From NCBI RefSeq assembly GCF_030028105.1, contig NC_092384.1, positions 16,995,629 to 17,059,628 on the forward strand: a stretch of DNA of 64,000 bases, in the 5' to 3' direction. Below the pieces are notes generated by a model, which was not told the DNA's origin, did no database searches, and worked only from the letters and a program-made list of their open reading frames with translations. Positions 1-42,707 of this stretch are shown piece after piece. Source of the stretch: Mobula birostris. Lineage: Eukaryota. A program made the position numbers and the translations under genes. Each line of letters begins with the position of its first letter. Position 1 is the stretch's first letter.

Positions 1-1700
1 CTTATCATATGATTAAATGTTTTATGTGGCACCTTATCGAACACGTTCTGGAAATCCAGGTAAGTAACTTCCATCTGTTCCCCTCTATCCACTGCACTCG
101 TTACATCCTTACAGAACTCAGAAGTTTGTCAAACAGTACCTGCCTTTGCTGAATCCCTGCTGCGTCTGCGTGAAGGACCACCTCTTTAGTGATAACTATT
201 TTATCGAGTTCCTCACCTCCATCGCATCATTATCATCTGTCTTCCCTTTCTTTATTTCTCACTTAGTGGTTCGCTTTGTGCTTGCTTTTTAAAGTTTTCC
301 CAATCTTCCAGTTTTCCACTATTCTTGGCGATTCTGTACGCACGAGCTTTCAGTTTCATACCTTCCTTTATTTCCTTTGTTATCCATGGCTGGCTCTCCT
401 CACCCTTACCGTCCTTGCTTTTAACTGGAATATACTTTTATTGAGCACCATAAAAAATCTCTTTTAAAGTTTTCTACTGTTCCTCAACAGTCTCACCATA
501 TAGCGTGTGTTCCCAGTCTAACCTATCCTCCCCTCCTTCATCCCTTTTGCGCCCTCCATTTGTAGAAGAAAATCAGTCATGCTGTGATCACTCTTTCCAA
601 GACGATCCCTAAATACAAGATGCGTAATTGTAAATGTCTCATTGCAGAGGGCCAGATCCAAGACTGTCTCGACCAACGTGAGGGCCTCTTCAAGACTGTC
701 TCGACCAACGTGATTCATTTAATCAATGTGCAAGTTAAAGTCCCCCAGGAGAACAGCTATGCGATTCTTACATGTCTCAGATATTTCTCTGTTTATTACC
801 TCTGCCACTGTAGTTGTTAGTTCCCTCGGGATCAATAAAGTATATCTATCTATCTATTAAACGGTGGCCGATAATCAACTCCCGTGAGTGATTTTTCCCT
901 CTTTGGTATTGCTAATCTCCACCTAGATGGAGTTAGGATTCTGCACGTTAGATCTTATATCGTCTCTCACTATTGTCCTGATCTCGTCCTCAATATAGAA
1001 CGCTTCCCTACACACCTTAATCTCCTCCCTATCCTTCCACATTACCTGATATCCTTGGATATTGAATTCCCAATCCTCTCCACCCTGCAGCCCCGTCTCT
1101 GTAACGACCGCAATATCATATGCCTTTATGCTGATCTGTGCCACAAGTTCATTCACCATGTTACGAATACTACTGGCCTTCAGATACACTCACTGTGCCT
1201 ATAAAATCTAATAATCGTTGTCTCTTACGTACTTGGCCTTTCTGCACAGCACGCTTGTTTTTCTCTTTATTTAAAAATTTGCTTTTCCGTTAACTTTATC
1301 CACACTTTTCTCCTTTACATTATCTATACTTCTTCAATCTGTTGAACCCACCCCCAGCTATTTCTTTTAAAGCCCTATCCATAACTCCTATGCGATTCGC
1401 CAGGATCCAGGTCCCAACACGGTTCAGGTGTATCGCATCTGAATGGAACAACTCCCTCCTTCCTCAATATTGGTGCCAGTTTCCCATGGATTCAATCCCA
1501 TTTTTCCCATACCTATCCTTGACCCACCCATTTAGCTGTCTAATCTTCTCAACCCTGTATCAGTTTGTACGTGGCTCAGGTAGTAATCAAGAGATTACCA
1601 TCTGATTGGTTCTGCTTTTTAATTTAGTCCCTGGCTGCTCAAATTCCCTCAGCAGAACCCCTTTCCTCTTTCTACCTATGTCGTTGATACCCACATTTCC
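1..1700 (-). mobile_element. CR1-type LINE fragment (ORF1 esterase C-terminus, ORF2 APE endonuclease and linker), degenerate
   Basis: Minus ORF 923-1189 (YLKASSIRNMVNELVAQ..YDIAVVTETGLQGGEDWEFNIQGY) matches the CR1 ORF2 APE N-terminus; neighbouring sequence resembles the CR1 ORF1 end and linker; many stops. Confidence 0.8.
715..858 (+). mobile_element. 3' tail of a Rex/Babar- or L2-type LINE inserted in the CR1
   Basis: Ends in TTCCCTCGGGATCAATAAAGTA followed by (TATC)n, the same GGATCAATAA core as the Rex tails at ~40070 and ~51280. Confidence 0.5.
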
Positions 1701-1701
1701 T

Positions 1702-1900
1702 TCAGGTGTAAGACTGTAAATAATGTAAAAACAGTACACTCGTTAACTTTTTCCCGTTCCGAAAAAGATTACTTTTCACATTTTCTTTCTCGTGTTTGTA
1801 CAGCTGTGCAGGCATATTCTCATTCCGGGTGGAGCTTGCTTTAAATGCTTCCGGTCGTACCTTGTTCGATAATCTAGCTGAAGTTGGCAGGAATTTTGAG
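1702..1900 (-). mobile_element. Possible L1 ORF1 C-terminal fragment
   Basis: Minus translation ARLSNKVRPEAFK..AQLYKHE..VKSNLF loosely resembles the C-terminus of fish L1 ORF1. Confidence 0.35.
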
Positions 1901-1919
1901 CGTTTCGTGAGATGCCACA

Positions 1920-2770
1920 CAGGTGTAAATCACTTTGCACTGAGCAGGACCGGGACCCCTCCTTGGAAACAGGACGTAGGGCCGGAACTCATACACAGAA
2001 CGCTGAGAAACAGATCTCCACTCAAGGTAGCGGCAAACTGCCGGACCTATCCAGGGGATGCCAGGGCACAAAGAGACGGTTCCCAACACAAGGCAGCAGC
2101 AAACGGTCGGACCTTCCTAGCGAAGGCGTGGACACAGAGACAGTTCAAAACAAGGATAGACAGTTCCTTATCTTGTTCCAGCGGATTAACTTGGCAGCGG
2201 TGCAGGCGAAGGTTGCAGGCGAGGGTTACAGGCGTGGCGAGGCAAGGCGAGGCAAGGCTTCAGACACTAGTTGCAGGGCAAGGCTACAGTAATTAGTTGC
2301 AGGGCAAGGTTTCAGACACAATGCGAATAATTTTTTTTAGTCAGAGGGTGCTTAATCTATAGATTTTGTTGCCACGGGCAGCAGTGGAGGTCAAGTCATT
2401 GGGTGTATTTAAGGCAGAGATTGATAGGTATCTGAGTAGCCAGGGCATCAAAGGTTATGGTGAGAAGGCGGGGCAGTGGGACAAAATGGGAGAATGGATC
2501 AGCTCATGATAAAATGGCGGAGAAGACTCAATGGGCCGAATGGCCGGCTTCCGCTCCTTTGTCTTATGGTCTTATGCAAGTCTCCAGGAGGACGGGGCCG
2601 AGAAGGGACTCAGACAGGGGGTTTGACGGGAACAATCCAGCAACTGAAGCTGAACCAAGGAGCTATTTATGTAGCCTGCCCAAAATGTCAATCAGCTGCC
2701 TCAATTAGAACACGCAACACAAAAAGGGAAACCAGAAAATTCGGACTTCACGGACCGGACCATAACATGG
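1920..2770 (-). mobile_element. LTR-type (Gypsy-like) LTR remnant interrupted by a CR1 3' fragment
   Basis: Ends in TTCACGGACCGGACCATAACA, matching the terminus of the solo LTR at 58503-59844; short GCAGGGCAAGG-type repeats; CR1 tail nested at ~2312-2578. Confidence 0.6.
2312..2578 (+). mobile_element. CR1 3' end fragment
   Basis: Nearly identical to the CR1 3' end at 8800-9108, including the (ATGGTCTT)n tail. Confidence 0.85.
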
Positions 2771-3049: not shown

Positions 3050-4245
3050 TCACCCTCTATTTTTGCTTCCGTTTAGATTATCAACACTTTTAAAGTTAGG
3101 CAAATCTTATGGCTCTTCTGGAGGAGGTGAGACCTGTCTTCGGAGAATTCACAGTCTCTTCCTAATAACCCTCTCTCGTTCTCCTCCCATCCCCTGCTGT
3201 CTCGGTTTTCTTACTGTTTCCCAAGCTGATCGGGATAACTGCTCAGCCAGGCTTTCCCTCGGTCTGACCATGCTAATGGGCAGCCCTCTGTCCTTCATGT
3301 CTGTAGTCACCTCTTCCACTGTCTGGTACAGCTGTCTCCCTCCTTCGTAAAACATCCTCAGTTTAGCAGTGTGCGGGGTTTGGAATTTAATCTTTTCTTG
3401 CTTTAATATTCGTTTCGCTTCGGAATATTCTTTTCGTTTCTGTAGGACCGCCGGGGGTAATCTTGATCGAAGTACATTAACTTCCCGTTCCTAAACACCC
3501 TCTTCTTACCCCAGGCCCTTCATAGAATCTCCGCCATGCTCTTAAATCGAAGGAATCTATGTACTATTGAGCGCGGCGTACTTTCTCTGTCTTCGGGAGG
3601 CCTCGGGACGAGCGCACCATGCGCCCTCTGAATTTCAATCTCCATAGTCGGGGGAATCTCCAGCGCATCCCGCAGCAACTTTTCTACAAACTTCATCATC
3701 GACACCCTCTCCGCTCCTTCGGGAACATTATAAATCCTGATCTTTATTCGTCGGGATTTTCCCTCCTGGTCAAGCAATTTACTCTCCTGTTGATTTAATA
3801 TCTTTATCGTCTTACTTAGTATCTGTTCCACGATTTGCACGTGATCTTCCACCTTCTCAATTCTTGTCTCTGCCATCGCTATTTTCTGATTGACGTTGGC
3901 GAACACTGACTTTATATCACTTAGTTACTGTTTTATATCTTTTTGGACTTCCCTTATCTCTTCCAAAATCCTTACCATATTTGCCGCTTCGCCTGAACGA
4001 GGCGCAGCGGCAGCTTCGCCACCACGCGCATGTGCAGGACAGCCGCTCGTTGCACCGCTCTCTTCCGTAGGCTCCGCAGTGATGCTTTTTCAAATATCCA
4101 TTCTTTTTCCCCATTTTTGCCCCCCTTATCAATTCAAATATTTTCGGAAGGTTTTATATTTGATGGATGAATGGGGCATAATATGCGTTTTTCCAGAGGA
4201 GCTATTGATTTAAGGTGCAATTCTGGAAAATGACATCACCGGAAC
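3050..4245 (-). mobile_element. L1 (fish-type) 5' end and ORF1, frameshifted
   Basis: ORF 3520-3906 shows a coiled coil followed by LLDQEGKSRRIKIRIYNVPEGAE..EIEIQRAHGALVPRP..PRSIVHRFLRF, the L1 ORF1 RRM signature. Confidence 0.88.
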
Positions 4246-7711: not shown

Positions 7712-9108
7712 AGCTTGACATCGGTGGTTGGGATGTTGTTGGAGTCGATTGTGTAGGATGAGGTTACAGAATACCTGGAGGCATATGACAGAATAGGCAG
7801 AACTGAGCATAGATTCCCTAAAGGAAAATCCTGCCTGACAAACCTATTTCAATTTTTTGAGGAAATCATCAGTAGGCTAGACAAGGCAGATGCAGTGGAT
7901 GTTGTATATTTGGATTTTCAGAAGGCCTTTGACAAAGTGCCACACATGAGGCTGCTTAACAAGATAAGAGCCCATGGAATTACGGGAAAGTTACATACGT
8001 GGATAGAGCGTTGGCTGATTGGCAGGAAACAGAGAGTGGGAATAAAGGGATCCTATTCTGGTTGGCTACGGGTTACCAGTGGTGTTCCACAGGGGTCCAT
8101 GTTTGGGCCGCTTCTTTTTACATTGTCCATCAACGATTTGGGTTATGGAATAGATGGCTTTGTGGCTAAGTTTGCTGACGATACGAAGATAGGTGGAGGG
8201 GCCGGTAGTGCTGAGGAAACGGAGAGTCCACAGAGAGACTTGGATAGATTGGAAGAATAGGCAGAGAAGTGGCAAATGAAGTACAATGTTGGAAAGTGTA
8301 TGGTTATGCACTTTGGCAGAAAAAATAAACGGGCAGACTATTACTTAAATGGGGAAAGATTTCAAAGTTAGGAGATGCAACGGGACTTGGGAGTCCTGGT
8401 ACAGGATACCCTTAAAGCTAACCTCCAGGTTCAGTCAGTAGTGAAGAAGGCGAATGCAATGTTGGCATTCATTTCTAAAGGAATGGAGTATAGGAGCGGG
8501 GATGTGATGTTGAGGCTCTATAAGGCGCTGGTAAGTCCTCACTTGGAGTACTGTGGGCAGTTTTGGTCTCCTTATTTAAGAAAGGCTGTGCTAACGTTGG
8601 AGAGGGTACAAAGAAGATTCACTAGAATGATTCCGGGAATGAGAGGGTTAACATATGAGGAACGTTTGTCCGCTCTTGGACTGTATTGCTTGGAGTTTGG
8701 AAGAATGAGGGGAGACCTTATAGAAACATTTCGAATGTTAAAAGGCATGGACAGAGTGGATGTGGCAAAGTTATTTCCCATGATGGGGGAGTCTAGCACG
8801 AGAGGGCATGACTTAAGGATTGATGGGCGCCCATTCAGAACAGAAATGCGAAGAAATTTTTCTAGTCAGAGGGTGGTGAATCTACGGAATTTCTTGCCAC
8901 AGGCAGCAGTGGAGGCCAATTCATTGGGTGTATTTAAGGCAGAGATTGATAGGTATCTGAGCAGCCAGTGCATCAAAGGTTATGGTTAGAAGGCGGGGGA
9001 GTGGGACTAAATGGGAGAATGGATCAGCTCATGATAAAATGGTGGAGCACACTCGATGGGCCAAATGGCCGACTTCTGCTCCTTTGTCTTATGGTCTTAT
9101 GGTCTTAT
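7712..9108 (+). mobile_element. CR1 LINE, 5'-truncated (RT domain to 3' tail)
   Basis: ORF 7895-8260 (DVVYLDFQKAFDKVPH..SGVPQGS..FADDTK) and ORF 8375-8989; (ATGGTCTT)n tail. Confidence 0.95.
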
Positions 9109-16817: not shown

Positions 16818-16872
16818 ATGGCGGAGAAGTTTACGGTTTCGTACATGACACTTCTGGCTATTACTTGGCTAA
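16818..16872 (+). CDS. Exon 1: signal peptide MAEKFTVSYMTLLAITWL
   Basis: ATG in good context (AAGATGG), hydrophobic core, donor A|GTATGC in phase 1; continues I-VKVTA on exon 2. Confidence 0.75.
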
Positions 16873-19800
16873 GTATGCTGATTTATACACGCCGTTTCCG
16901 AATTGAATATTCCGTTTAATAATATTTAACCCTCGGTGCCTGCAGCATATTCGGTTACCGTTTTTCGTCTATTCGGCCGTTTCTCGCTCTTAGATGTTTA
17001 GTGACTTACGTCATCAGTTTTTGTTAATTCACTGTGTTTAACTGTTATTAATACTCTTGCTTACTTTTCCGGCAGTCGTCAAAGTAACTGCGAACGAAGT
17101 ATCTCAATTCCCGAGGGACTTGGATGTCCTGGGTGGTGCGAATGTTACTATGTTCTGCAAATTTCCACTAACACAAGGTACCGTTGACGTTCGTTGGTGG
17201 AGGCAAGGCGAGAAGGCATTTTTAGAAAGGGACAGCAGAAGACAATTTACTGTAGAAAGGGGAAGAGGAACGCTTGTACTTTGGAATGTCAAATTCAACG
17301 ACTCTGGACTGTATTACTGTGAAGTAAAGTTTCAGGAGCAATCTTTCGGGAGAAGCTGTAGCACCAAGCTCACTGTGTTCGGTAAGTGTGGTTGTTTGGA
17401 GATTTTCGGCTCTGTGCATTTTACATCAAACTTAGTGATAAGGATAAAACGGAATGTTTCTACTTGATAATACAAACGGCGAGAATACATTTGTTTCCCG
17501 CGTTAAAATATACCCCAGTCCAGGGATTCTAAATTCAGAACTACAAAGAACAGAAAAAATTTATGTAGCAACTATTAGGCGCATAATGGAGTTGATTCTG
17601 TTTATCGTATCGTACTTCCTCGGCTCTTCCTTACTGCTGTTTGTCCAGCCCGGTTCATCAGCTATCTCCTAGTTAAACCTGATGACTAAAGTCAGTGATA
17701 CCTTAGGACTTTACCCTCATTATCGCGAAGGTACTTTGAATACAACGAATGACTTTTCAAGCAAGGTTAGGATTGTTTTGCAAGCAAGGGGCTGAACTAA
17801 TATCAATATTAATATGAATGGCTGGCGTTGGATAACTCGATTCGTCTTTACTAAGGACGCAAAATATTAATACTTAAATAGAATAATCTCTATCAAAGAG
17901 TCTGTATGCAGCAGCACAATGCTCCAATCCGCATCAACAAGTAGAGAGGAATAATACCCAACTCCTAACGAGTTAATTCCAACATCAAGTAACAATTTGT
18001 CGCTTGCACTGCAAACTGTCATCCCAACTTTTTTCATGCAGGATTAGCAAAATCTAAACTTCTTTCACCATACAAAATGGGGAGTAATAGAGGCCTCTCG
18101 AGATCGAGGTGAATTTTGATAGGGTTAGATCGTAAAGGGTTGAGAGTCGAGCGCAAACCCACATTCAACATGTCCGCTGGCAGCTCATTCCACAATAGCA
18201 ATACCGTCTGAGTGAAAACGTTTCCGCTGATGTTCGCCTTTAATACTTCTCATTTTACTCTTAAGCTATGACTTCTAATTACATTCTCACCAATCTCAGT
18301 GGATGAAGCAGGCTTACATGCATCAGATCTACATCCCTCATAATTTTGTATACCTCTATCAAATGTTTGCTTGTTCTGTTACGAATCATGAGCAAAAATC
18401 CTAACCTGTTAAACCTTTGCTCGTCATCCATGTCCTCAAATTCATGCCACATCTTTGTAAGTTTTCTTTGTATTTATTCAATCGTATTTAAACTTTACTG
18501 AAGATAGGTAACCAGAATTGCGAACAATACTCCAGATTTGTTCTGAATAACGTCTAATACAACTTCAACATGGCATCCCAACTTCTACGCTCAATACTCT
18601 GATATATGAAGGCCGATATGACAAAGGTTATCGTTACGATACCATCCGCCTTTGACTTCACTTTCAATGAATTATCAATCTATATTCCAAGATAACTTTT
18701 TACCACACTTCCTAATGCGAGTCTCTTTCAGTTTGTATATCCGAGATTGGTTTGTCTTCCCAAAGTAGCAGCATACAATTACCTTCATTAAATTCTATCT
18801 GCGATTTTCAGTCCACCTGGTCTATAACCCGCTGCAAGCTTTGATAGGCATGCAGTCCAGCACTAGTCAAAGGCCTTCGCTCAAAGAACAACCATCTACT
18901 ACCATACTCTGGCTGCTCCCGCGAAGCCTACGTTAGACACAACTTACTCCATCATCCTGAATGCGAAGCGAACGTACTTGATTAGCCCACCACCCTCAGG
19001 CAGAACTTTTCTAAAGTAATTGCTAAAATCCATGTTGACTATATCCACTGTTATCCTTCATCAAGATCAATGGTAACCGGCTCGAAAAGCTCATTAAGAT
19101 TGGTTTTACACAGTCTACCTTGCAAAAAACATGTTGTGTAATCCCAATCAAGCCCAGTCTATTTATTTCTCCTATTGTTTAGAATATCTTTCAATACATT
19201 ACCCAGTTATCTGTAATACCAACTAGTCTATAATATCTCGGCTTATTCCGAGAGTCCATCTTGAACAACGGCACACTAGATACATAATTGGAGCAACACA
19301 CATAAAAATTGCTGGTGAACGCAGCAGGCCAGGCAGCATCGATAGGAAAAGGTACGGTCAGCGTTTCGGGCCGAGACCAATTGGAAAGCAAGTTCATGGG
19401 AAACTGAAAGATCTGAAGGTAGGTAATTCACCTGGATCAGATGATGAACATCCCAGGATTCTGGTAAATGTTGCTCATAGGATTGTGGATGTTTTAATAA
19501 GGTCTTTCAATAATTACTAAATTCTTGAGTGGTTTCGATAGACAAGAAAATTGTAAATGTCACTCCACTCTTCAAGAAGCCTGAAGGCGGAAAAGGGAAA
19601 CTGTAGGCCAGTCAGTCTGACCTCACTAGTTGACAAGATGTTGGAGTCCATCATTAAGGATCAGGACTTAGGTTAGCTGGAGACACATAATAAAACACGC
19701 ACTATTCAGCATAATTTCCTGAAAGGAAACTCTCGCCAGACAAATCTGATTGAATTATTTGAAGGAATAAAAAGTGGGATAGATAAAGATAGGCAGAATC

Positions 19801-22800
19801 GGTTGTTATGCACTTGGATTTTCAGAAGGCCTTTGACAAGGTACCACACACAATGCTGTTAAACAAGCTACGAGCCCAAAGTATTACAAGAAAGATAATA
19901 GGGTGGATAAAGCAGTGGCTGGTTGGTAAGTGACAAACAATGGGAATAAAGTGAGCATTTTCTGGTTGGCTGCCCGTGACTAACGGAGTTCCACAGGGGT
20001 CTGCGCTGTGACCGATTCGTTCAATGTTATCTGTCAATGATATGGATGGTGGAATTGATGGCTTTGTTGCAAAGTTTGCAGACGATATGAAGAGAGGTGG
20101 AGAGGCAGGCAGTTTTAGGAAATAGAGAGGCTACAGAAGGACTGAGACAGATTAGGAGGGCAGGCAAAGAAATGGCAGGTGGAATGCAGTATCGAGAAGT
20201 GTGTGAGCATGCAGTTTGGTGGAGGGTGTGAAAGTTTTGAATATGTTCTAACTGGAGAGAAAACACAAAAAAGAAACATTCAGGTGCAAAGGGATTTGGG
20301 AGTCCGTGTGCAGTATTCCATACAGGTTAATTTGCATTTTGGGTCTGTGGTCAGGAAGGCAAATCCAATGATCGCATTCATTGCAAAAGGACTAGAATAT
20401 AAGGGCCAGGATGTAATGTTCAGACTTCATAAAGCACTGGTGAGGCGTGAGGCGTCACGGCGTATTTTGCATCTTGGCCCCCGAAGAACAATGTTTCGCT
20501 TCAGAGTGTGTGTGTATGGTTGAGCAACAATAAACAGAACGTGAAATTGAAAGGATTTATTAAATACTGGTTAATACTGCGGGTAACTAATTTGATAGTT
20601 GAACGTCATGCTAGTTGGAGGGGAGATAAGGGAAGTTACCTGTACTGATATGGATTGAAAATACTCAATATAACTATGTTTTTACTCAAGCTCCTCCAAC
20701 TCCATTGGAAATTGTTCCTGTTGGAGGGTTTTCGTTTCCTCGAAAGCTCCTTTGTAAAACGGCTGCCTTCTACCCGGAGGAATTAGAAATCGTTTGGCAA
20801 AGAAATAACAAGCAAATTCGCACTGGAATAGAGAGTGTGAAAAACCGAAGCGTGGATGGATTGTTCGAAGCTTTTAGTTTATTGGAAATCACGCAGTCTA
20901 CTTGGGAAAAAGATGTTTACACCTGCCTGGTGTCGCATGGCTCCCTCACGGTGCCTGCCAGTTTCAGCTTCGTCCAGGACCAAGGTAAGATGGTGTTTTG
21001 ATGAAGTCATGATGTTGGATCTCGGCCTTAAACGTCGACATTTTAGATCTGCCTGATGGGCTGAGTTCCTCCATTTTATGTGTTATTCTGAATTCAGCAT
21101 GTTCAGAATCTTCTGTGCTCAATGTAAATGGAAGTCTTTACAAGTCATAGCTTGTGGGGTAAATGTGACCTTGTTAAGAACAGTAACTGAACAGCTACCC
21201 AAACACGGAAAGAATGGCTAATTTTGAAGTTTAGTAATTGACAGGGAATATTAAACGTGAACGGTGTTCAAAAGTTAAAGTGTTATTCCGGTCAGTGTTA
21301 ATCGTGTAGGACGAATAAGGAAATTGAATTCGTGCAATATTTGTAAGGTAGCAAACGTTTGAACATTTGCTAAAAATATGACAAAGCAAAACTTAAACTC
21401 TAAAAGACATAGTAATATAACAAAGGTGAGAATATGCATTTCGTATCTTACGATATATTTCCCGATCGTGTGTACTGAGATTTGAAACGAGCCTGTAAAA
21501 TATTTTGGATTGTTGATTGTCATGTGTGCATTTGTTTTTAGATGAAGAAATGCTTCACAGTTTCTTGTTTTTCCCCCTATTGATCCACAAGGTGCTGATA
21601 CTAAATTGATTCTCTCATATACACTGAAGGGAGCGGCAATTTTAGCACTGATAATGGTTTTGGTGACAGTCAACTTAAAGAGATCGCACGGTAAGAACGA
21701 TGATCGCTGAGAAACATCACCTCTATTCGTCCAAACAGATGCGTTAATGATATTTAACCGCAAAACAGTAAATGCCCTTTACAAAATGACTGGACATGGA
21801 TTGCGATTTTCGAAGTCAGACTCAGTGATAATGCCCAGTTACAATAGAAGGTAGATCTTAAAATTCAACTATTTCACCAGTCCACTCGAAGTATTACACA
21901 TCTCATTCACAAATGCTTTTCTATAATTTTGGAGTTCTTCAACTGTTTTAAATGCAATGGCAGATCTATACTTTGAAGCGTAAAGAACACTGACGAGCTC
22001 GTGCATGTCTCATTGATTTTAATTTCCATTTCAGCGACAGTATTTAAGTGTAGTACGGCCACTGATATACTATTATCACTTTACAGCTTCGTTAAAAGTT
22101 TATTGAGCATAGTGCCATGAGGTTGACGCGGAACACACACTGTATCAGGACAATTGATATCACCAAATGCTTTCTGAAATATCCGTACCTTGCGCAGTTC
22201 GTCTTACACAATGAATTCGATTCGTATCAAACGAATAAAGTCCAATTTTTACAATACAAATAATTTATTTTATTTTTCTTAAGGGATTAACAGAAGTTCC
22301 TTGAACAGATGTCAGAATGAGGAGCCGGTAGGTGAACTGGATCGTCTTCTTTCAGAGCCATGTATACGCATAGTAGAGATATTATAAATTTATTTTGTTC
22401 CACAACATTTTGGAATGCAGTAGGGAAGAATGAAACCATTCTCTCTGACCAGTTTTTAAATTTTGAAGTATATATCCAAGATGTATTTGAATATTCCTGT
22501 TGAATATGCTTCAAATCGTCTTTGAGGATTCAACACCAGTTCATAACCGGTTGCATTAAGGCGCTCGGCAATATTAACTAATGGACGTTAAGCAGTTACT
22601 CATACTTCGTGTGGCGAATAATTAAATACAAATCTAAGACTGGGATGTTTTAGATGTAAAATGTCGGTTTACGAGAATTGCGATGTAGTGCCAATCGGAA
22701 AATACAGTACACGCACGAATCATTTCGCAATATATGTTACATTTGATTTGAACGCACAGTAAGCAAGCTTAAAAATGCAATGAAATCTTGCTTTGGAACG

Positions 22801-24328
22801 TCATATGCAGTTTTTAACCCCGATTCCCAACAAAGATTCACACAGCCGTGCATAACCTGCAATGTAATCGAATATGCTTCCAATTAAACCTTGTACTATC
22901 TGGTGCACAATGATACCCAAACCAAACTCCACAAGACACCTTCTACTCCACGGGGCTACGCTGAACGATGATCATCCTCAATTTGGAAAGAAATGCCTGA
23001 AACATATAAATGTATTGTCATCTCCCATTTTGGATTCAAACCAGATATTAAAAACCTATAACGACATCTTTGGAGGCAGTAATAGTTGTCCCTTCAGATG
23101 GAACCTCCTTCCCCAGAAAGCAACGTAAATGTTAGCTGTTTCTCTTTGCTCTCGTGTTTCCTGTTTCACCGTAAGTTTTATTTGTCTGTTTTATTTCATA
23201 TTTCCAGCAGTTTAATGTTATTAAATTTGTCCCACCTGGATTCTCCTGATAGGATATATTAAATATTTATCGGTTGTATACCCATCTGTCTACAACTGGA
23301 AACGTCTTCTTGTGTTCCATTAATCGCCTTCCCAATTTTAGCACATATTTTTACTTTTACGTAACAATAGCTGCTGCAGCAACTTTTCACATCACCAAAA
23401 CAAGAATGTCATATATAATACTGGTTTTATTATAGCAGAATTCCGTAAGTACTTTCATCAGTGTTCGTAGTACTTCTTGGAATGAAGGACTGCTAATGCG
23501 AGGAATACCTAAGTTGAAGCTAGAACATTCAAGATAACATTTTCACTGTTGTTTTATTGCTCTGGTATGCTATGTCATTGTTTAAGCCAAAACAAATGCT
23601 ATTTTAACTATTTACTTTAACGGGCAAGTCCATCTGCTCTAATTATTTCGATCGTAGTTTAATTGATGCACTAGTAAAACCAATCAGCTCATCAGCGGGC
23701 AAGATGCTTCTCCCATATTTGCTGCCTTAGTTACGTAAGTACACCAGGTCTTGCCATTTGTTTCAAGGTTCATAACTTAAACAATGCGAGCTTTAAGGGT
23801 CACCGTTTCGAATTGCACCGAGGGGACGAAATCTGGTCATGCCAATGATTACAATTATTTGACGGGGTGCGTAAGGGAAACGGATCGGATAAAGCCCATG
23901 CAAAAAAAAACTTAGAGGATCGTAACTAGAGATATGACAAAAAAAATGAAACAAAAGAGATGGCCAGAACTGAGAAACGCCTCGATAGATAGGAAGGTTT
24001 TAACTGGTTGTTTGGAAATCTAATGTACACAGCGATTTCCCGCCTGAAATGGATTTGGTATCCCACTCCTGTAAGATATAGGGACAATATTTTTGTGCGC
24101 ACCCAAAATGTTACTCCAACCATTTAAAATAATTTTCTATGATTACATGTTCCGAATCGAACTTAGTTCATGGTCACTGACCTCTGTATTCGTTACCAGT
24201 ATTAACTGTGTTTTCTCTAGCAGGCTGAACAAGGAGCGGTTGAGCACGCCACTGCTTATAATTCACTAAATATGAGGGAGAGCACAGGAATTCGCAAAGA
24301 TCCACAACAAGAAGTGCGCATTATCTAA
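16818..24328 (+). CDS. SIRP-like / non-rearranging antigen-receptor-like Ig-superfamily receptor (leader-VJ-C1-TM-cytoplasmic), ~300 aa; join(16818..16872,17076..17381,20691..20984,21592..21690,22284..22327,24224..24328)
   Basis: Six consecutive GT-AG exons with compatible phases (1,1,1,1,0) give an uninterrupted ORF with signal peptide, V-set, C1-set, TM and tail. An exon-6-skipping form joining 22327 to 26625..26756 would be ~309 aa. Confidence 0.88.
17076..17381 (+). CDS. Exon 2: V-set Ig domain with germline-joined J-like strand
   Basis: Acceptor CTTACTTTTCCGGCAG; VSQFP..GANVTMFC, VRWWRQ, DSGLYYC, FGRSCSTKLTVF; donor G|GTAAGT. Confidence 0.95.
18060..19270 (-). mobile_element. Degenerate CR1 fragment in intron 2
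   Basis: The reverse complement resembles CR1 RT and C-terminal sequence; heavily mutated. Confidence 0.65.
19400..20455 (+). mobile_element. CR1 RT fragment in intron 2
   Basis: RPVSLTS, LDFQKAFDKVPH, GVPQGS and KFADD motifs with stops. Confidence 0.85.
20691..20984 (+). CDS. Exon 3: C1-set Ig domain
   Basis: APPTPLEIVP..KLLCKTAAFYPEELEIVWQRN..DGLFEAFSLLEI..YTCLVSHGSL: the FYP, DGxF and YxCxVxHxSL C1 motifs; acceptor ..TTTTTACTCAAG, donor G|GTAAGA; phase 1-1. Confidence 0.95.
21592..21690 (+). CDS. Exon 4: transmembrane exon GADTKLILSYTLKGAAILALIMVLVTVNLKRSH with intramembrane Lys
   Basis: 99 nt, phase 1-1; polypyrimidine acceptor ..TCCACAAG, donor G|GTAAGA; ~22-residue hydrophobic stretch followed by KR; Lys codon at 21627-21629. 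Confidence 0.88.
22284..22327 (+). CDS. Exon 5: cytoplasmic GINRSSLNRCQNEEP
   Basis: Acceptor TATTTTTCTTAAG, donor CCG|GTAGGT; 44 nt converts phase 1 to phase 0 as required by the downstream exons. Confidence 0.75.
22773..23072 (-). pseudogene. Possible decayed MHC class I-like alpha1/alpha2 sequence, antisense in intron 5
   Basis: One minus frame with 3 stops reads RYRFLISGLNP..LYVSGISFQIEDDHRSA*PRGVEGVLW..YSITLQVMHGCVNLCWESGLKTAYDVPKQDFIAF; TLQxMxGC and AYD..DFIAF resemble class I alpha2 motifs. Spacing is imperfect. Confidence 0.35.
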
Positions 24329-24334
24329 TCTCAG
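24224..24334 (+). CDS. Exon 6: cytoplasmic (Q)AEQGAVEHATAYNSLNMRESTGIRKDPQQEVRII* with in-frame TAA at 24326-24328
   Basis: NAGNAG acceptor TTTTCTCTAG|CAG (start 24221 or 24224), donor CAG|GTAACG; the last 14 codons align without gaps to paralogue 40179-40220, which has TAT at the stop position. Confidence 0.8.
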
Positions 24335-24629: not shown

Positions 24630-25345
24630 TATATAAGACCAACATATAATTGAACATTATTAGATTATGAGAACACTAAGTCCCTTTTTATTGTCATTTA
24701 GAAATGCATACATGCATTAAGAAATGATAAAATGTTTCTCTGGAGTGATATCACAGAAAACAAGACAGACCAAAGACTAACACTGACACAACGACATAAT
24801 TATAATATATAGTTACAGCAATGTAAAGCAATACCACAATTTGATAAAGAACAGACCATGGGCACAGTGAAATAAAGTCTCAAAGTCCGGAGTCGATCGA
24901 CTCCTGAGTCCCCGATAGCAGGCGGCAAAAGGGAGAAACTGCCTGCCATAAAACTCCAGACACCGTCAACTTGCCGATACCTTGGAAGCAGCCGACCCTA
25001 GCCGACACTGAGTCCGTCCGTTCGAAAACTCCGAGCTTCCGACCAGCCTTTCCGATACAGCCTCCCGAGCGCCATCCTCTGCCGAGCGGCTTCGGCCTCT
25101 CCCCGGCCGCTGAAACACGCAAAGCCGAGGATTTCCGGGCCTTCTGCTCCGGAGATATCCGGTTACCACACAGCACCAACGGCAGCGAAGCAGGCATTTC
25201 AGAAGCTTTCCAGGTGTTCCGCTGTTATCTCACGTCTGTCTCCATCAAATCAGAATTGCTCACGGTCCCCTACTTGACAGATAACAGTTTTTCATCACCG
25301 AAGTGGCCGCGGGCACTGACGTCACACCGCCATCTTCTCCCCCCT
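24630..25345 (-). mobile_element. Non-autonomous LINE-derived element (AAGATGGCGG 5' motif, CATAATCTAAT tail)
   Basis: Same family as 40340-41020 (shared CTTCTGAAATGCCTGCTTCGCTGC core); no coding capacity. Confidence 0.6.
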
Positions 25346-25449
25346 CCCGCGAGGCTCATTTTACGACACTGAGCAGACCTTTGGCACTTTACCAAAATGT
25401 AGACTGCACCAGAGCTCACCCTCTTTCACAGAAAATGAACCTGGTACCA

Positions 25450-25985: not shown

Positions 25986-26624
25986 TCGAGATTATCTTTT
26001 TCCCATTGCTTTTACGAATTTGATTTCATATGTTATGTGCAAACAAGGAAACACTAAAAAGCATGAAACTAGATATAACCATCCTTTGCAACGCCTATTA
26101 CCAGCTCCATAATGGACATGAATAACTGATCCAACCGAACAGTGGTGTTATTCATGGAAATATCGAATAGTGACAAAACAGTAACCATACGGCATGGATC
26201 ATGACAGTGTCTGTGAGCATTTGGAGTTCTGCAGGAAACACCCGGAAGATCTCTTGACTGAAACGTTTGCGGCAATCAGACACATATAACACAAAAAGGC
26301 GCTTGCATTTTGAGGTATAAAATATTTTGTACTATACCCGTTTAAGGAGTTACCTACTCTCCCAAGTCGATTTTGTTAAAATTCATTTCAAGTAAGGAAA
26401 GAAACGCTTATATTTCTGTGGGACGACGCAGGTTCTTGGAGTTGAAATACCACATGAATCAAAAAGCAAAATTTTGAAAAAAAATGACATAAACATTGTG
26501 TAAAGCGGCAGACACCTAAAATTGATAACTTATGAGTGCATAACTAATTTATTTCATAATTTTTGATTCGATTTGTCAACTCGATGATTGTCGATTAACC
26601 ACTAATTTCAAATTATTTTCACAG

Positions 26625-26756
26625 ACTAAAAGAAATGGAGCTGACAATCTGGCTTACGCCGCTCTGCAGTTTCCCGATTCCAAGAACACCTCAGCAGCCC
26701 AACATCAAAACCAACATACATTGTATACAGATGTAAATGCATCAAGGAAACTGTGA
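26625..26756 (+). CDS. Exon 7 (terminal): TKRNGADNLAYAALQFPDSKNTSAAQHQNQHTLYTDVNASRKL* with ITIM (LAYAAL) and ITSM (TLYTDV)
   Basis: Acceptor ATTATTTTCACAG, phase 0, 44 codons to TGA; ITIM 26649-26666, ITSM 26718-26735. Translated only if exon 6 is skipped or its stop is absent. Confidence 0.85.
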   Translation, partial: TKRNGADNLAYAALQFPDSKNTSAAQHQNQHTLYTDVNASRKL

Positions 26757-26949
26757 AGATGAGAACCAACTGGCGTTCAGAGCTATAGGTTGTCAAGGAC
26801 TGCAGGCACCAGGCATTGCTTCGTTCCATTTCTTGCATTCAGACAAAAGCTTGTTAATCGATATCACATGCATAAGTTGACAAGATAAGCGATCATTTTA
26901 GTCACCGAAGTTCCTGTGATTTAATTGGGGCGATTATCACTGGAAAAAT

Positions 26950-40105: not shown

Positions 40106-40162
40106 GTTTAGGTTTTACAACTCTAAGTTAGTTTATGATCACTGAGCTAACCTGAACTATAG

Positions 40163-40220
40163 GGAGAGCAAACCATTTCGCAAAGATCGACAACAGGTGG
40201 ACCGCGTTATCTATTCCCAG
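40163..40220 (+). pseudogene. Exon 6 remnant of the paralogue (..RKDRQQVDRVIYSQ|GT)
   Basis: Donor CAG|GTAAAG retained and Tyr codon TAT at 40212-40214; the acceptor and 5' part of the exon are deleted relative to 24181-24270. Confidence 0.75.
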
Positions 40221-40339
40221 GTAAAGCAGAGAGATTAGCGTGAATATGATACAGATTTTCATTAGAGATATACCACGGTAACTGACCTTTCCGGTGCAAC
40301 TAGTCCTTGCCGCGCAGTCACACCCATGTGACTAATTGA

Positions 40340-42575: not shown

Positions 42576-42707
42576 ACTAAAGGAAATGGAGCTGACAAAT
42601 TGACTTATGTCGCTCTGCAGATTCCCGATTCGAATTATACACAGGCATCCAAACGTCAAAGTATACGTACATTACACGCAGGTGTAAGTACATCAAAGAA
42701 GCTGTAA
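42576..42707 (+). pseudogene. Paralogous terminal exon TKGNGADKLTYVALQIPDSNYTQASKRQSIRTLHAGVSTSKKL* (ITIM kept, ITSM Tyr to His)
   Basis: Acceptor TTACTTTCACAG intact; 44 codons, gap-free alignment with 26625-26756 and stop at the same codon. Confidence 0.82.

Follow-up and report, generated by a model that had tools for sequence, protein, structure and literature searches.

A transmembrane lysine in a tail-truncated V-C1 receptor gene of Mobula birostris, a candidate activating member of a paired receptor set

Receptors that come in activating and inhibitory pairs, with a charged transmembrane (TM) residue, are textbook knowledge for mammals, and such pairs have also been demonstrated in bony fishes. 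SIRP-beta1 and SIRP-alpha have a V-type N-terminal domain followed by two C1-set Ig domains; the inhibitory sister carries several tail tyrosines, including ITIM-type motifs, and SIRP-beta1 has a TM lysine near the centre of the helix and a truncated tail. Activating KIRs (KIR2DS/3DS), built of C2/I-type Ig domains of the LRC, derive from inhibitory forms through a TM lysine at position 9 and a premature stop that removes the ITIMs. KIR2DL4, NKp44 and mouse CD33 combine a basic TM residue with a retained ITIM/ITSM-like tyrosine motif, and a TM lysine in mouse CD33 is mentioned in PMC6890642. In the CD300C/CD300A pair of primates, the charged TM residue of the short-tailed member is acidic (Glu191) in some species and basic (Lys) in others, and the ectodomain undergoes gene conversion (PMC12447643); the acidic form of CD300C is the one that has been studied, with FcR-gamma. 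A properly placed lysine in an otherwise poly-Leu or poly-Val TM segment suffices for DAP12 assembly in vitro (PMC1440944), and DAP12 prefers lysine, the KIR lysine and the DAP12 aspartate pair both lying at about position 9 (Feng et al., 2006, PMC1440944). A 2014 survey reported FcR-gamma and related receptor systems to be missing in cartilaginous fishes, and our literature search for ray TYROBP, HCST, FCER1G and CD247 yielded nothing usable beyond this negative for FcR-gamma. The same kind of search for hagfish APAR paired receptors, a possible precedent for acidic residues in the TM, brought up no description of them, and no paper on the V-C1 family of sharks and rays treated here was found.

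The gene described here lies on the forward strand of a window of 64,000 nucleotides, the whole stretch of Mobula birostris DNA that was analysed, and all coordinates are positions within it. Exon 1 (16818..16872), which was read directly, provides the start codon and signal peptide, from M1 to L18 and the first base of codon 19. Exon 2 (17076..17381) encodes a compact V-set Ig domain with a J-like G strand (Pfam V-set, E=1.1e-10) and an extra cysteine, Cys113 (TGT, 17357-17359). Exon 3 (20691..20984) encodes a C1-set Ig domain (Pfam C1-set, E=2.4e-13) and is the single C1 exon between the V and TM exons. Exon 4 (21592..21690), bounded by an AG acceptor at 21590-91 and a GT donor at 21691-92 and in phase 1 at both ends, encodes a short stalk, a TM helix from L224 to L247 and the basic stop-transfer sequence KRSH, its product reading G-ADTK-LILSYTLKGAAILALIMVLVTV-NLKRSH. 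The membrane-proximal tail (GINRSSLNRCQNEEP) follows in exon 5 (22284..22327), and exon 6 (24224..24334) carries an ITSM-like TAYNSL motif (Tyr278) and a natural TAA stop (24326-24328), 6 nt ahead of the exon 6/7 junction. Joining exons 1 to 6 (16818-16872 through 24224-24334) gives a 300-residue product identical to the NCBI protein P0154 of M. birostris, named 'NCR3LG1-like', with the layout signal, V, C1, TM and tail. The tail is about 50 residues long, and because it keeps TxYxxL, P0154 is not signal-less on its own. The sequence-only reading had stated that the locus still encodes an ITIM+ITSM exon, and this was borne out: exon 7 (26625..26756) holds an intact frame with an ITIM (LAYAAL) and an ITSM (TLYTDV).

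RNA support came from assembled contigs of three sequencing runs. One contig junction links 22327 to 24224, and another contig joins 24223-24331 to 26622-26800; the gene is transcribed and spliced, and the only joins found among the spliced contigs were exon 5-6 and exon 6-7. It follows from these two joins that the transcript observed retains exon 6 with its stop, and that its ITIM+ITSM exon belongs to the 3'UTR. The translated product ends …RII, ahead of the ITIM/ITSM exon, leaving a tail that lacks the ITIM and keeps the one ITSM-like motif. NCBI lists one product for the gene, ending at the same stop. Exon 4, the TM exon, lies outside the contig coverage, a gap that proves nothing about exon use; that the exon enters the mRNA is concluded from the NCBI model, from reading phase and from homology.

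The membrane lysine of exon 4 is a genuine feature. It had been placed at about position 8 of a 22-residue helix; we found it, as Lys231 (AAG, 21627..21629), to be residue 8 of the 22-residue hydrophobic span. Prediction likewise puts it inside the membrane segment: in an AlphaFold2 model built on a 31-sequence family alignment, residues 219-251 form one continuous helix that includes Lys231, and on the Wimley-White octanol scale it falls within every best-scoring 19-, 21- and 23-residue window, as residue 6-8 of the window; windows with the lysine at an edge score worse, the best of them by about 3 kcal/mol. Lys231 substitutes the first glycine of the family's conserved Gly-Gly TM motif. Of the 22 ray members that could be aligned, 19 have Gly in this column, two have Asp and P0154 alone has Lys; the column after it is invariantly Gly, and lysine here is no chance feature of the family. 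The AAG codon is at least two base changes away from any Gly codon.

P0154 belongs to a V-C1-TM family of cartilaginous fishes that has no name, many members of which are automatically labelled 'SIRP-alpha-like' by NCBI and others 'NCR3LG1-like' or 'TCR-beta-like'. It has the signal peptide, compact V-set and C1-set domains, TM exon with a ..GG.AIL.. motif and phase-1 exons of that family, whose homologues occur in rays, sharks and a chimaera (Scyliorhinus, Heterodontus, Heptranchias, Carcharodon, Chiloscyllium, Callorhinchus). Its V and C1 domains are each 57-88% identical to those of ray members, with lower values only to the distant P0169 and P0170. Many family members carry SIRP-alpha-like ITIM/ITSM tails. 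Relative to these, Lys231 appears to be derived, in a member whose tail is truncated, and the V domain of P0154 is 87% identical to that of the ITIM-bearing paralogue P0010.

The resemblance to SIRP extends to the order of V-type and C1-set domains, to the inhibitory sisters with several tail tyrosines, and to the combination of a TM lysine near the helix centre with a truncated tail. The family differs from SIRP, however, in having one C1 domain instead of two, and P0154 in its tail of some 50 residues with TxYxxL; sequence and fold searches gave no preferential match that would indicate SIRP orthology. Fold searches scored B7, butyrophilin, TAPBPR, SIRP and Ig light chains about equally, and since they do not separate these five groups, the fold gives no basis for a family assignment. 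A sequence match to UrIg/UrIg2 (PDB 9dmx, PMC12227049) was rejected as family, that gene being a different one with a VJ domain and many C1 domains. As in KIR, an activating form appears to derive from inhibitory ones by a TM lysine and an early stop, with ectodomains kept similar by recombination or gene conversion, but the KIR lineage is unrelated and the manta cassette is old, common to manta and stingrays, with a charge that differs in sign between them. For this last property CD300C is the closest precedent, although CD300 has a single V domain and is a different family. With KIR2DL4, NKp44 and mouse CD33, P0154 shares a basic TM residue alongside a retained tyrosine motif (TAYNSL); in the manta transcript seen, however, a stop precedes the full ITIM+ITSM exon.

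The TM and tail of P0154 have a history distinct from that of its V domain. P0154, P0167 (Hemitrygon akajei) and P0180 (Hypanus sabinus) share the stop after …RII and form one TM+tail clade (support 96/96); both stingray proteins have Asp in the Lys231 column, so that the basic residue itself is not conserved within the cassette. Their tails (EHATAY..S..MRE..) are 69-76% identical between manta and stingrays, and owing to this conservation the short-tail cassette is an ancient and constrained piece of the gene, not a product of decay. A search for further short-tail cassettes with residues 212-300 returned only P0154 and P0167, and the protein collection searched holds no counterpart from Mobula hypostoma. 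In the V tree, on the other hand, P0154 groups with Mobula members (support 95/92), its neighbours being P0010, P0151 and P0153, with an uncharged TM and an ITIM tail, and P0158 and P0162, with an Arg-containing TM and a short tail. This grouping implies that one ectodomain type is paired with three signalling cassettes. The disagreement between the V and TM+tail trees is the mosaic pattern of paired receptors.

Charged TM segments recur elsewhere in the family. Other Mobula members have Arg (P0158, P0162) or Glu (P0030), and four shark orders share a separate conserved Arg-containing TM cassette with short tails (P0060, P0133, P0138, P0172). Within the rays, under a stricter count, a charged TM core was present in 6/15 members that lack the ITIM exon and in 0/7 that have it (one-sided p=0.067; 22 sequences that are not independent), whereas a broad count over 38 family proteins with loose ITIM/ITSM patterns gave no link (p=1.0). 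The association between TM charge and ITIM absence may thus be called suggestive only.

These features suggest that P0154 is probably the activating counterpart of inhibitory sister genes. More specifically, we tentatively favour a reading in which P0154 belongs to a paired receptor set as its member with truncated tail and charged TM, and Lys231 may serve as an adaptor assembly site for an activating receptor. Measured from the mid-membrane point of the helix, Lys231 would lie about one and a half turns higher, in place of the conserved Gly on the small-residue face (A/C..GG..A). We infer that its charge is buried there, and most likely it would provide the polar contact through which the receptor assembles with a disulfide-linked signalling dimer bearing two acidic TM residues (DAP12/DAP10/zeta-type). 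Ligand bound by a V domain nearly identical to those of the ITIM-bearing sisters would then give an activating signal in place of an inhibitory one. Position 8 fits the depth rule for lysine and DAP12 (position 9), as a comparison of sequence positions alone. The activating potential ascribed to the gene by the sequence-only reading is in keeping with the lysine in the span, its DAP12-like depth, the truncated tail and a V domain close to that of P0010. It is weakened by the charge reversal within the cassette, since no single classical base-to-acid model can account for both manta and the Asp-bearing stingray members of the clade, and the reported absence of FcR-gamma from cartilaginous fishes likewise counts against it.

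A different explanation, which we regard as somewhat unlikely, is that P0154 is a decoy receptor with a tolerated, interfacial lysine and no adaptor. The TM register would be shifted towards the cytoplasm, with Tyr228 in the aromatic belt and Lys231 snorkelling to the outer head-groups; devoid of the ITIM/ITSM exon, the protein would compete with its inhibitory sisters for ligand or signal weakly through TAYNSL. In the short-tail clade the N-terminal part of the span is more polar, having gained S, Y and T, and two lysines on the cytoplasmic side are replaced (K244 by T, K246 by N), which gives a 24-residue span (224-247). A register shift with Lys231 snorkelling outward and needing no partner could result, and the window 229-247, in the lower register, still has a favourable score of -3.7 kcal/mol. 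Alternation of Asp and Lys would be easier to accept at a site near the interface, and a charge is missing from the TM in 9/15 of the ray members without the ITIM, so that short uncharged forms are common in the family. Nevertheless, the upper register, which includes Lys231, is better by about 3 kcal/mol, and Asp cannot snorkel as Lys does. The site is, moreover, an otherwise invariant Gly of a conserved pair, whose sole three departures are all ionisable and all belong to one old conserved cassette.

It is less probable that the ionisable residue serves hetero-oligomer formation with some other membrane protein of complementary charge, such as an Arg-, Glu- or Asp-bearing family member. CD300 heterocomplexes and TCR/CD3-like assemblies provide models for such partners, and the charge flip between manta and stingrays would then mark a swap of role or partner. 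Candidate charges do exist, as Arg and Glu in the Mobula members named above and Asp in the stingrays; Lys231 lies on a small-residue face typical of helix-helix packing, and Cys113 in the G strand of the V domain hints at covalent dimers. This cysteine is at what we take to be the position where CD79a and CD79b form their inter-chain disulfide. Against this, no manta member was found with an acidic residue at the depth of Lys231, the Arg and Glu of the other members being one turn higher, and co-variation across species is not demonstrable with the few sequences.

The further suggestion of a dual-function receptor like KIR2DL4 or NKp44, in which skipping of exon 6 joins the Lys-bearing TM to the ITIM+ITSM exon, seems to us improbable. 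Such a tail would need a hypothetical transcript that omits exon 6. Since exon 5 ends in phase 0, as does exon 6, skipping keeps the frame; for the paralogue P0153 an isoform without exon 6 is annotated, and exon 7 retains its 43-codon frame up to the family's usual stop position; yet the upstream stop is common to the stingrays. The contigs joining exons 5-6-7 are compatible with a minor exon-6-skipped isoform, but those joins and the single NCBI product place the stop before the ITIM+ITSM exon. In addition, the transcript requires exon 7 as its last exon in any case, and gene conversion from paralogues nearby could have preserved the open frame there. Finally, it is very improbable that the truncated cassette is an ancient ray signalling module whose TM residue switched sign (Asp in stingrays, Lys in mantas) with a change of partner and which, with the CD79-like, unpaired Cys113 of the V domain, forms covalent, TCR/BCR-like two-chain receptors held by a Lys-acid pair; if true, the oldest jawed vertebrates would have a look-alike of antigen-receptor assembly that involves no rearrangement.

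On the favoured reading of P0154 as an activating partner, a design well known from mammals would be present in a manta gene. Tail-truncated members of the family repeatedly have Lys, Arg, Asp or Glu in the TM segment, and this recurrence leads to the prediction that adaptors with acidic TM residues, or an equivalent partner, were already at work in the oldest living jawed vertebrates. The exchange of Asp and Lys between stingrays and manta parallels that of primate CD300C, and may offer a natural experiment on the evolution of partner choice.

We assembled the manta gene on the forward strand as a leader exon (16818-16872), a V exon (17076-17381; Pfam V-set, E=1.1e-10), a C1 exon (20691-20984; Pfam C1-set, E=2.4e-13), the TM exon (21592-21690; AG acceptor, GT donor, phase 1 at both ends), exon 5 (22284-22327) and exon 6 (24224-24334), with a TAA stop at 24326-24328. 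Translation of these six spliced exons matched every residue of P0154, a 300-aa NCBI protein of Mobula birostris with the automatic name 'natural cytotoxicity triggering receptor 3 ligand 1-like'. The reading frame of the TM exon opens with a stalk of a few residues (G-ADTK), continues as a hydrophobic segment of 22 residues (LILSYTLKGAAILALIMVLVTV) and closes with NLKRSH; the codon of the TM lysine, Lys231 (AAG), lies at 21627-21629 (+). The V domain has an additional cysteine, Cys113 (17357-17359, +), in its J-like G strand (…FGRSCSTKLTV…); the Mobula paralogues P0010 and P0151 have it too (…SSCGTSLTV…), and the stingray short-tail proteins do not. In CD79a and CD79b the cysteine of the inter-chain disulfide (…SCGTYLRV / …GCGTELRV) occupies the equivalent spot, so chains with Cys113 may form covalent dimers.

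The sequence-only reading had placed this lysine inside the transmembrane helix, and both approaches used here confirmed it. A single helix spanning the entire TM exon, residues 219-251, was predicted by AlphaFold2 from a 31-sequence family alignment. Hydrophobicity windows were scored on the Wimley-White octanol scale; the best 19-, 21- and 23-residue windows began at 224 or 225, with Lys231 at position 7 or 8 in each. The span is bordered by Lys223 on the outer side and Lys248-Arg249 on the inner side, which sets Lys231 4-5 residues above the midpoint. The lysine is thus predicted to be deep enough to be membrane-embedded, though shallow enough that it may snorkel.

The V exon was searched exhaustively; with giant multi-Ig proteins set aside, it matched proteins of 130-410 aa, once each and across the entire domain. 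Word-based searches with two full-length members gave 25 and 34 relatives among the matches listed, from rays (Mobula birostris, M. hypostoma, Hypanus sabinus, Hemitrygon akajei and Pristis), sharks (Scyliorhinus, Heterodontus, Heptranchias and Chiloscyllium) and a chimaera (Callorhinchus); three further genera, Carcharodon, Mustelus and Narcine, came from a cluster look-up. The automatic names of these proteins are mixed (SIRP-alpha-like, NCR3LG1-like, TCR-beta-like, lambda light chain-like, PD-L1-like and tapasin-related), indicating a V-C1-TM family without a name of its own, and a literature search found no published description of it. Comparison of P0154 and its family by sequence and fold, with solved and predicted structures, favoured no V-C1 family, as Ig light chains, B7-H6, CD276, TAPBPR, SIRP-alpha and butyrophilins scored alike. 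UrIg2 gave a sequence match but was rejected, its VJ and many C1 domains marking a different gene. Many members have a SIRP-alpha-like tail of three or four tyrosines, among them those of an ITIM (LTYAAL) and an ITSM (TLYADV), both encoded by the last coding exon.

Other pieces of the family lie in the window. A C1 exon fragment at 1844-1936 (-) (…VIYTCVASHETLKIPANFS*…) contains an in-frame stop, the remaining exon being unrecognisable, and probably derives from a pseudogene. Two isolated tail exons, copies of exon 6 (40146-40226, +; …RVIYSQ…) and exon 7 (42576-42704, +; …LTYVALQ…TLHAGV…, the ITSM Tyr changed to His), seem to be what is left of an adjacent paralogue; the stretch from 27 to 40 kb showed no detectable V, C1 or TM exon. 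Reverse-transcriptase-like open frames occur at 7757-8986 (+) and 3152-3924 (-).

Among the 22 ray members whose TM exon could be aligned, the Lys231 column holds Gly in 19, Asp in two and Lys in the manta gene only, and the column after it is an invariant Gly. The ray consensus (..ILACALGGSAIL..) presents a small-residue face, which is typical of helix packing. At least two substitutions are needed to turn any Gly codon into AAG. The Asp-bearing proteins, P0167 (Hemitrygon akajei) and P0180 (Hypanus sabinus), share with P0154 a Y-T ahead of the charged residue, VNLKRS past the helix and EHATAY in the tail. All three terminate at exactly the same residue (…RII*), where long-tailed relatives have …IIYSQ and read on, and a maximum-likelihood tree of the TM+tail part united them with 96/96 support. 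Tail identity of 69-76% between manta and stingrays points to an old TM+tail cassette under constraint.

The V-domain tree disagreed with the TM+tail tree and placed P0154 inside a Mobula-only clade (support 95/92). In this clade, P0010 and P0151 join a full ITIM-bearing tail to an uncharged TM, P0153 has an uncharged TM and an ITIM tail, and P0158 and P0162 carry a TM Arg (..LIFRSALGG..) and short tails without ITIM; the V domain of P0180 groups elsewhere, with family members P0166 and P0030 (100/100). These differing TM segments and tails, together with 87% identity between the V domains of P0154 and P0010, show one ectodomain type joined to three signalling cassettes. Such mixing typifies clusters of paired receptors that exon shuffling or gene conversion has shaped. 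A charged TM-core residue was present in 6 of 15 ray members without an ITIM exon vs 0 of 7 with one, which is no more than suggestive of a link, as the sequences are themselves related (one-sided Fisher p=0.067); a looser count across the whole family showed none. Sharks of four orders (Scyliorhinus, Carcharodon, Chiloscyllium and Heptranchias) have a second conserved TM cassette, in which Arg sits close to the outer end and (D/E)-H close to the inner end; its tails are short in every case (P0060, P0133, P0138, P0172). As an old adaptor-coupled form, this shark cassette is a better candidate than the manta Lys.

RNA from three runs of one study yielded parts of the locus as contigs covering exons 5-7. 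A contig in run X1 joined 22327 to 24224 (exon 5 to 6), and another spanned 24223-24331 and resumed at 26622-26800 (exon 6 to 7), the intron between them having GT..AG ends; the manta gene is therefore transcribed and spliced. The exon 6 acceptor is a tandem NAGNAG (24221-24226, +; …ctctagCAGgct…), whose second AG is used by both the RNA contig and the NCBI model of P0154; the first would add one Gln. The transcript with the 6-7 junction includes exon 6 and its stop, 6 nt upstream of the last junction, and given the usual 50-55-nt rule nonsense-mediated decay is not expected. The ITIM+ITSM exon ascribed to the locus is intact in frame (LAYAAL and TLYTDV), but is 3'UTR in the observed transcript. 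Skipping of exon 6 would hold the frame and give a computed 309-aa product with an ITIM+ITSM tail, and paralogue P0153 has an annotated isoform without exon 6; no exon 5-to-7 junction was seen among the contigs, which drop rare forms. Read-through of the exon 5 donor (22328-22384, +) encodes a short alternative tail (…EPVGELDRLLSEPCIRIVEIL*) resembling the annotated end of paralogue P0155, so some 'short-tail' database entries may be intron-retention forms. A repeat in intron 6 (24631-25426), probably an abundant transposable element, reached contig depths in the thousands in all three runs, vs ~9 for exons.

In mammalian receptors, one well-placed basic residue in an otherwise featureless TM helix suffices to assemble with DAP12 or DAP10; Lys is favoured by DAP12 and Arg by FcR-gamma, and the Asp pair lies near the centre in DAP12 (position 9) and in the upper third in FcR-gamma (position 6) (PMC1440944). 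With its Lys at position 8 and a tail truncated relative to its ITIM sisters, the manta receptor follows the DAP12 pattern, and on this basis we tentatively rank first the reading that Lys231 would couple P0154 to an adaptor. Against this, a 2014 survey reported that cartilaginous fishes lack FcR-gamma (PMC4016189), and the stingray copies of the same cassette carry Asp. The TM charge of CD300C, the short-tailed partner of CD300A, is likewise reversed among species, most primates having Glu191 and seven species Lys (PMC12447643). A sign flip at such a site thus has a precedent in the evolution of paired receptors and is by itself no argument for lost function. In the manta-stingray short-tail clade, two lysines on the inner side are also gone and the outer end has acquired polar residues, so the helix register could move and Lys231 could then reach the interface unaided by snorkelling; however, the best window with Lys231 at position 3 scored ~3 kcal/mol worse on the octanol scale. 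Taken as a whole, the interpretation in the sequence-only reading, adaptor coupling with activating or dual-function potential, is partly supported.

The manta gene is an unpublished-looking example of a well-known design, the paired receptor with a charged TM, from a little-studied vertebrate group. It is not a new principle; a further curiosity is that the charge switches between acid and base across ray lineages.
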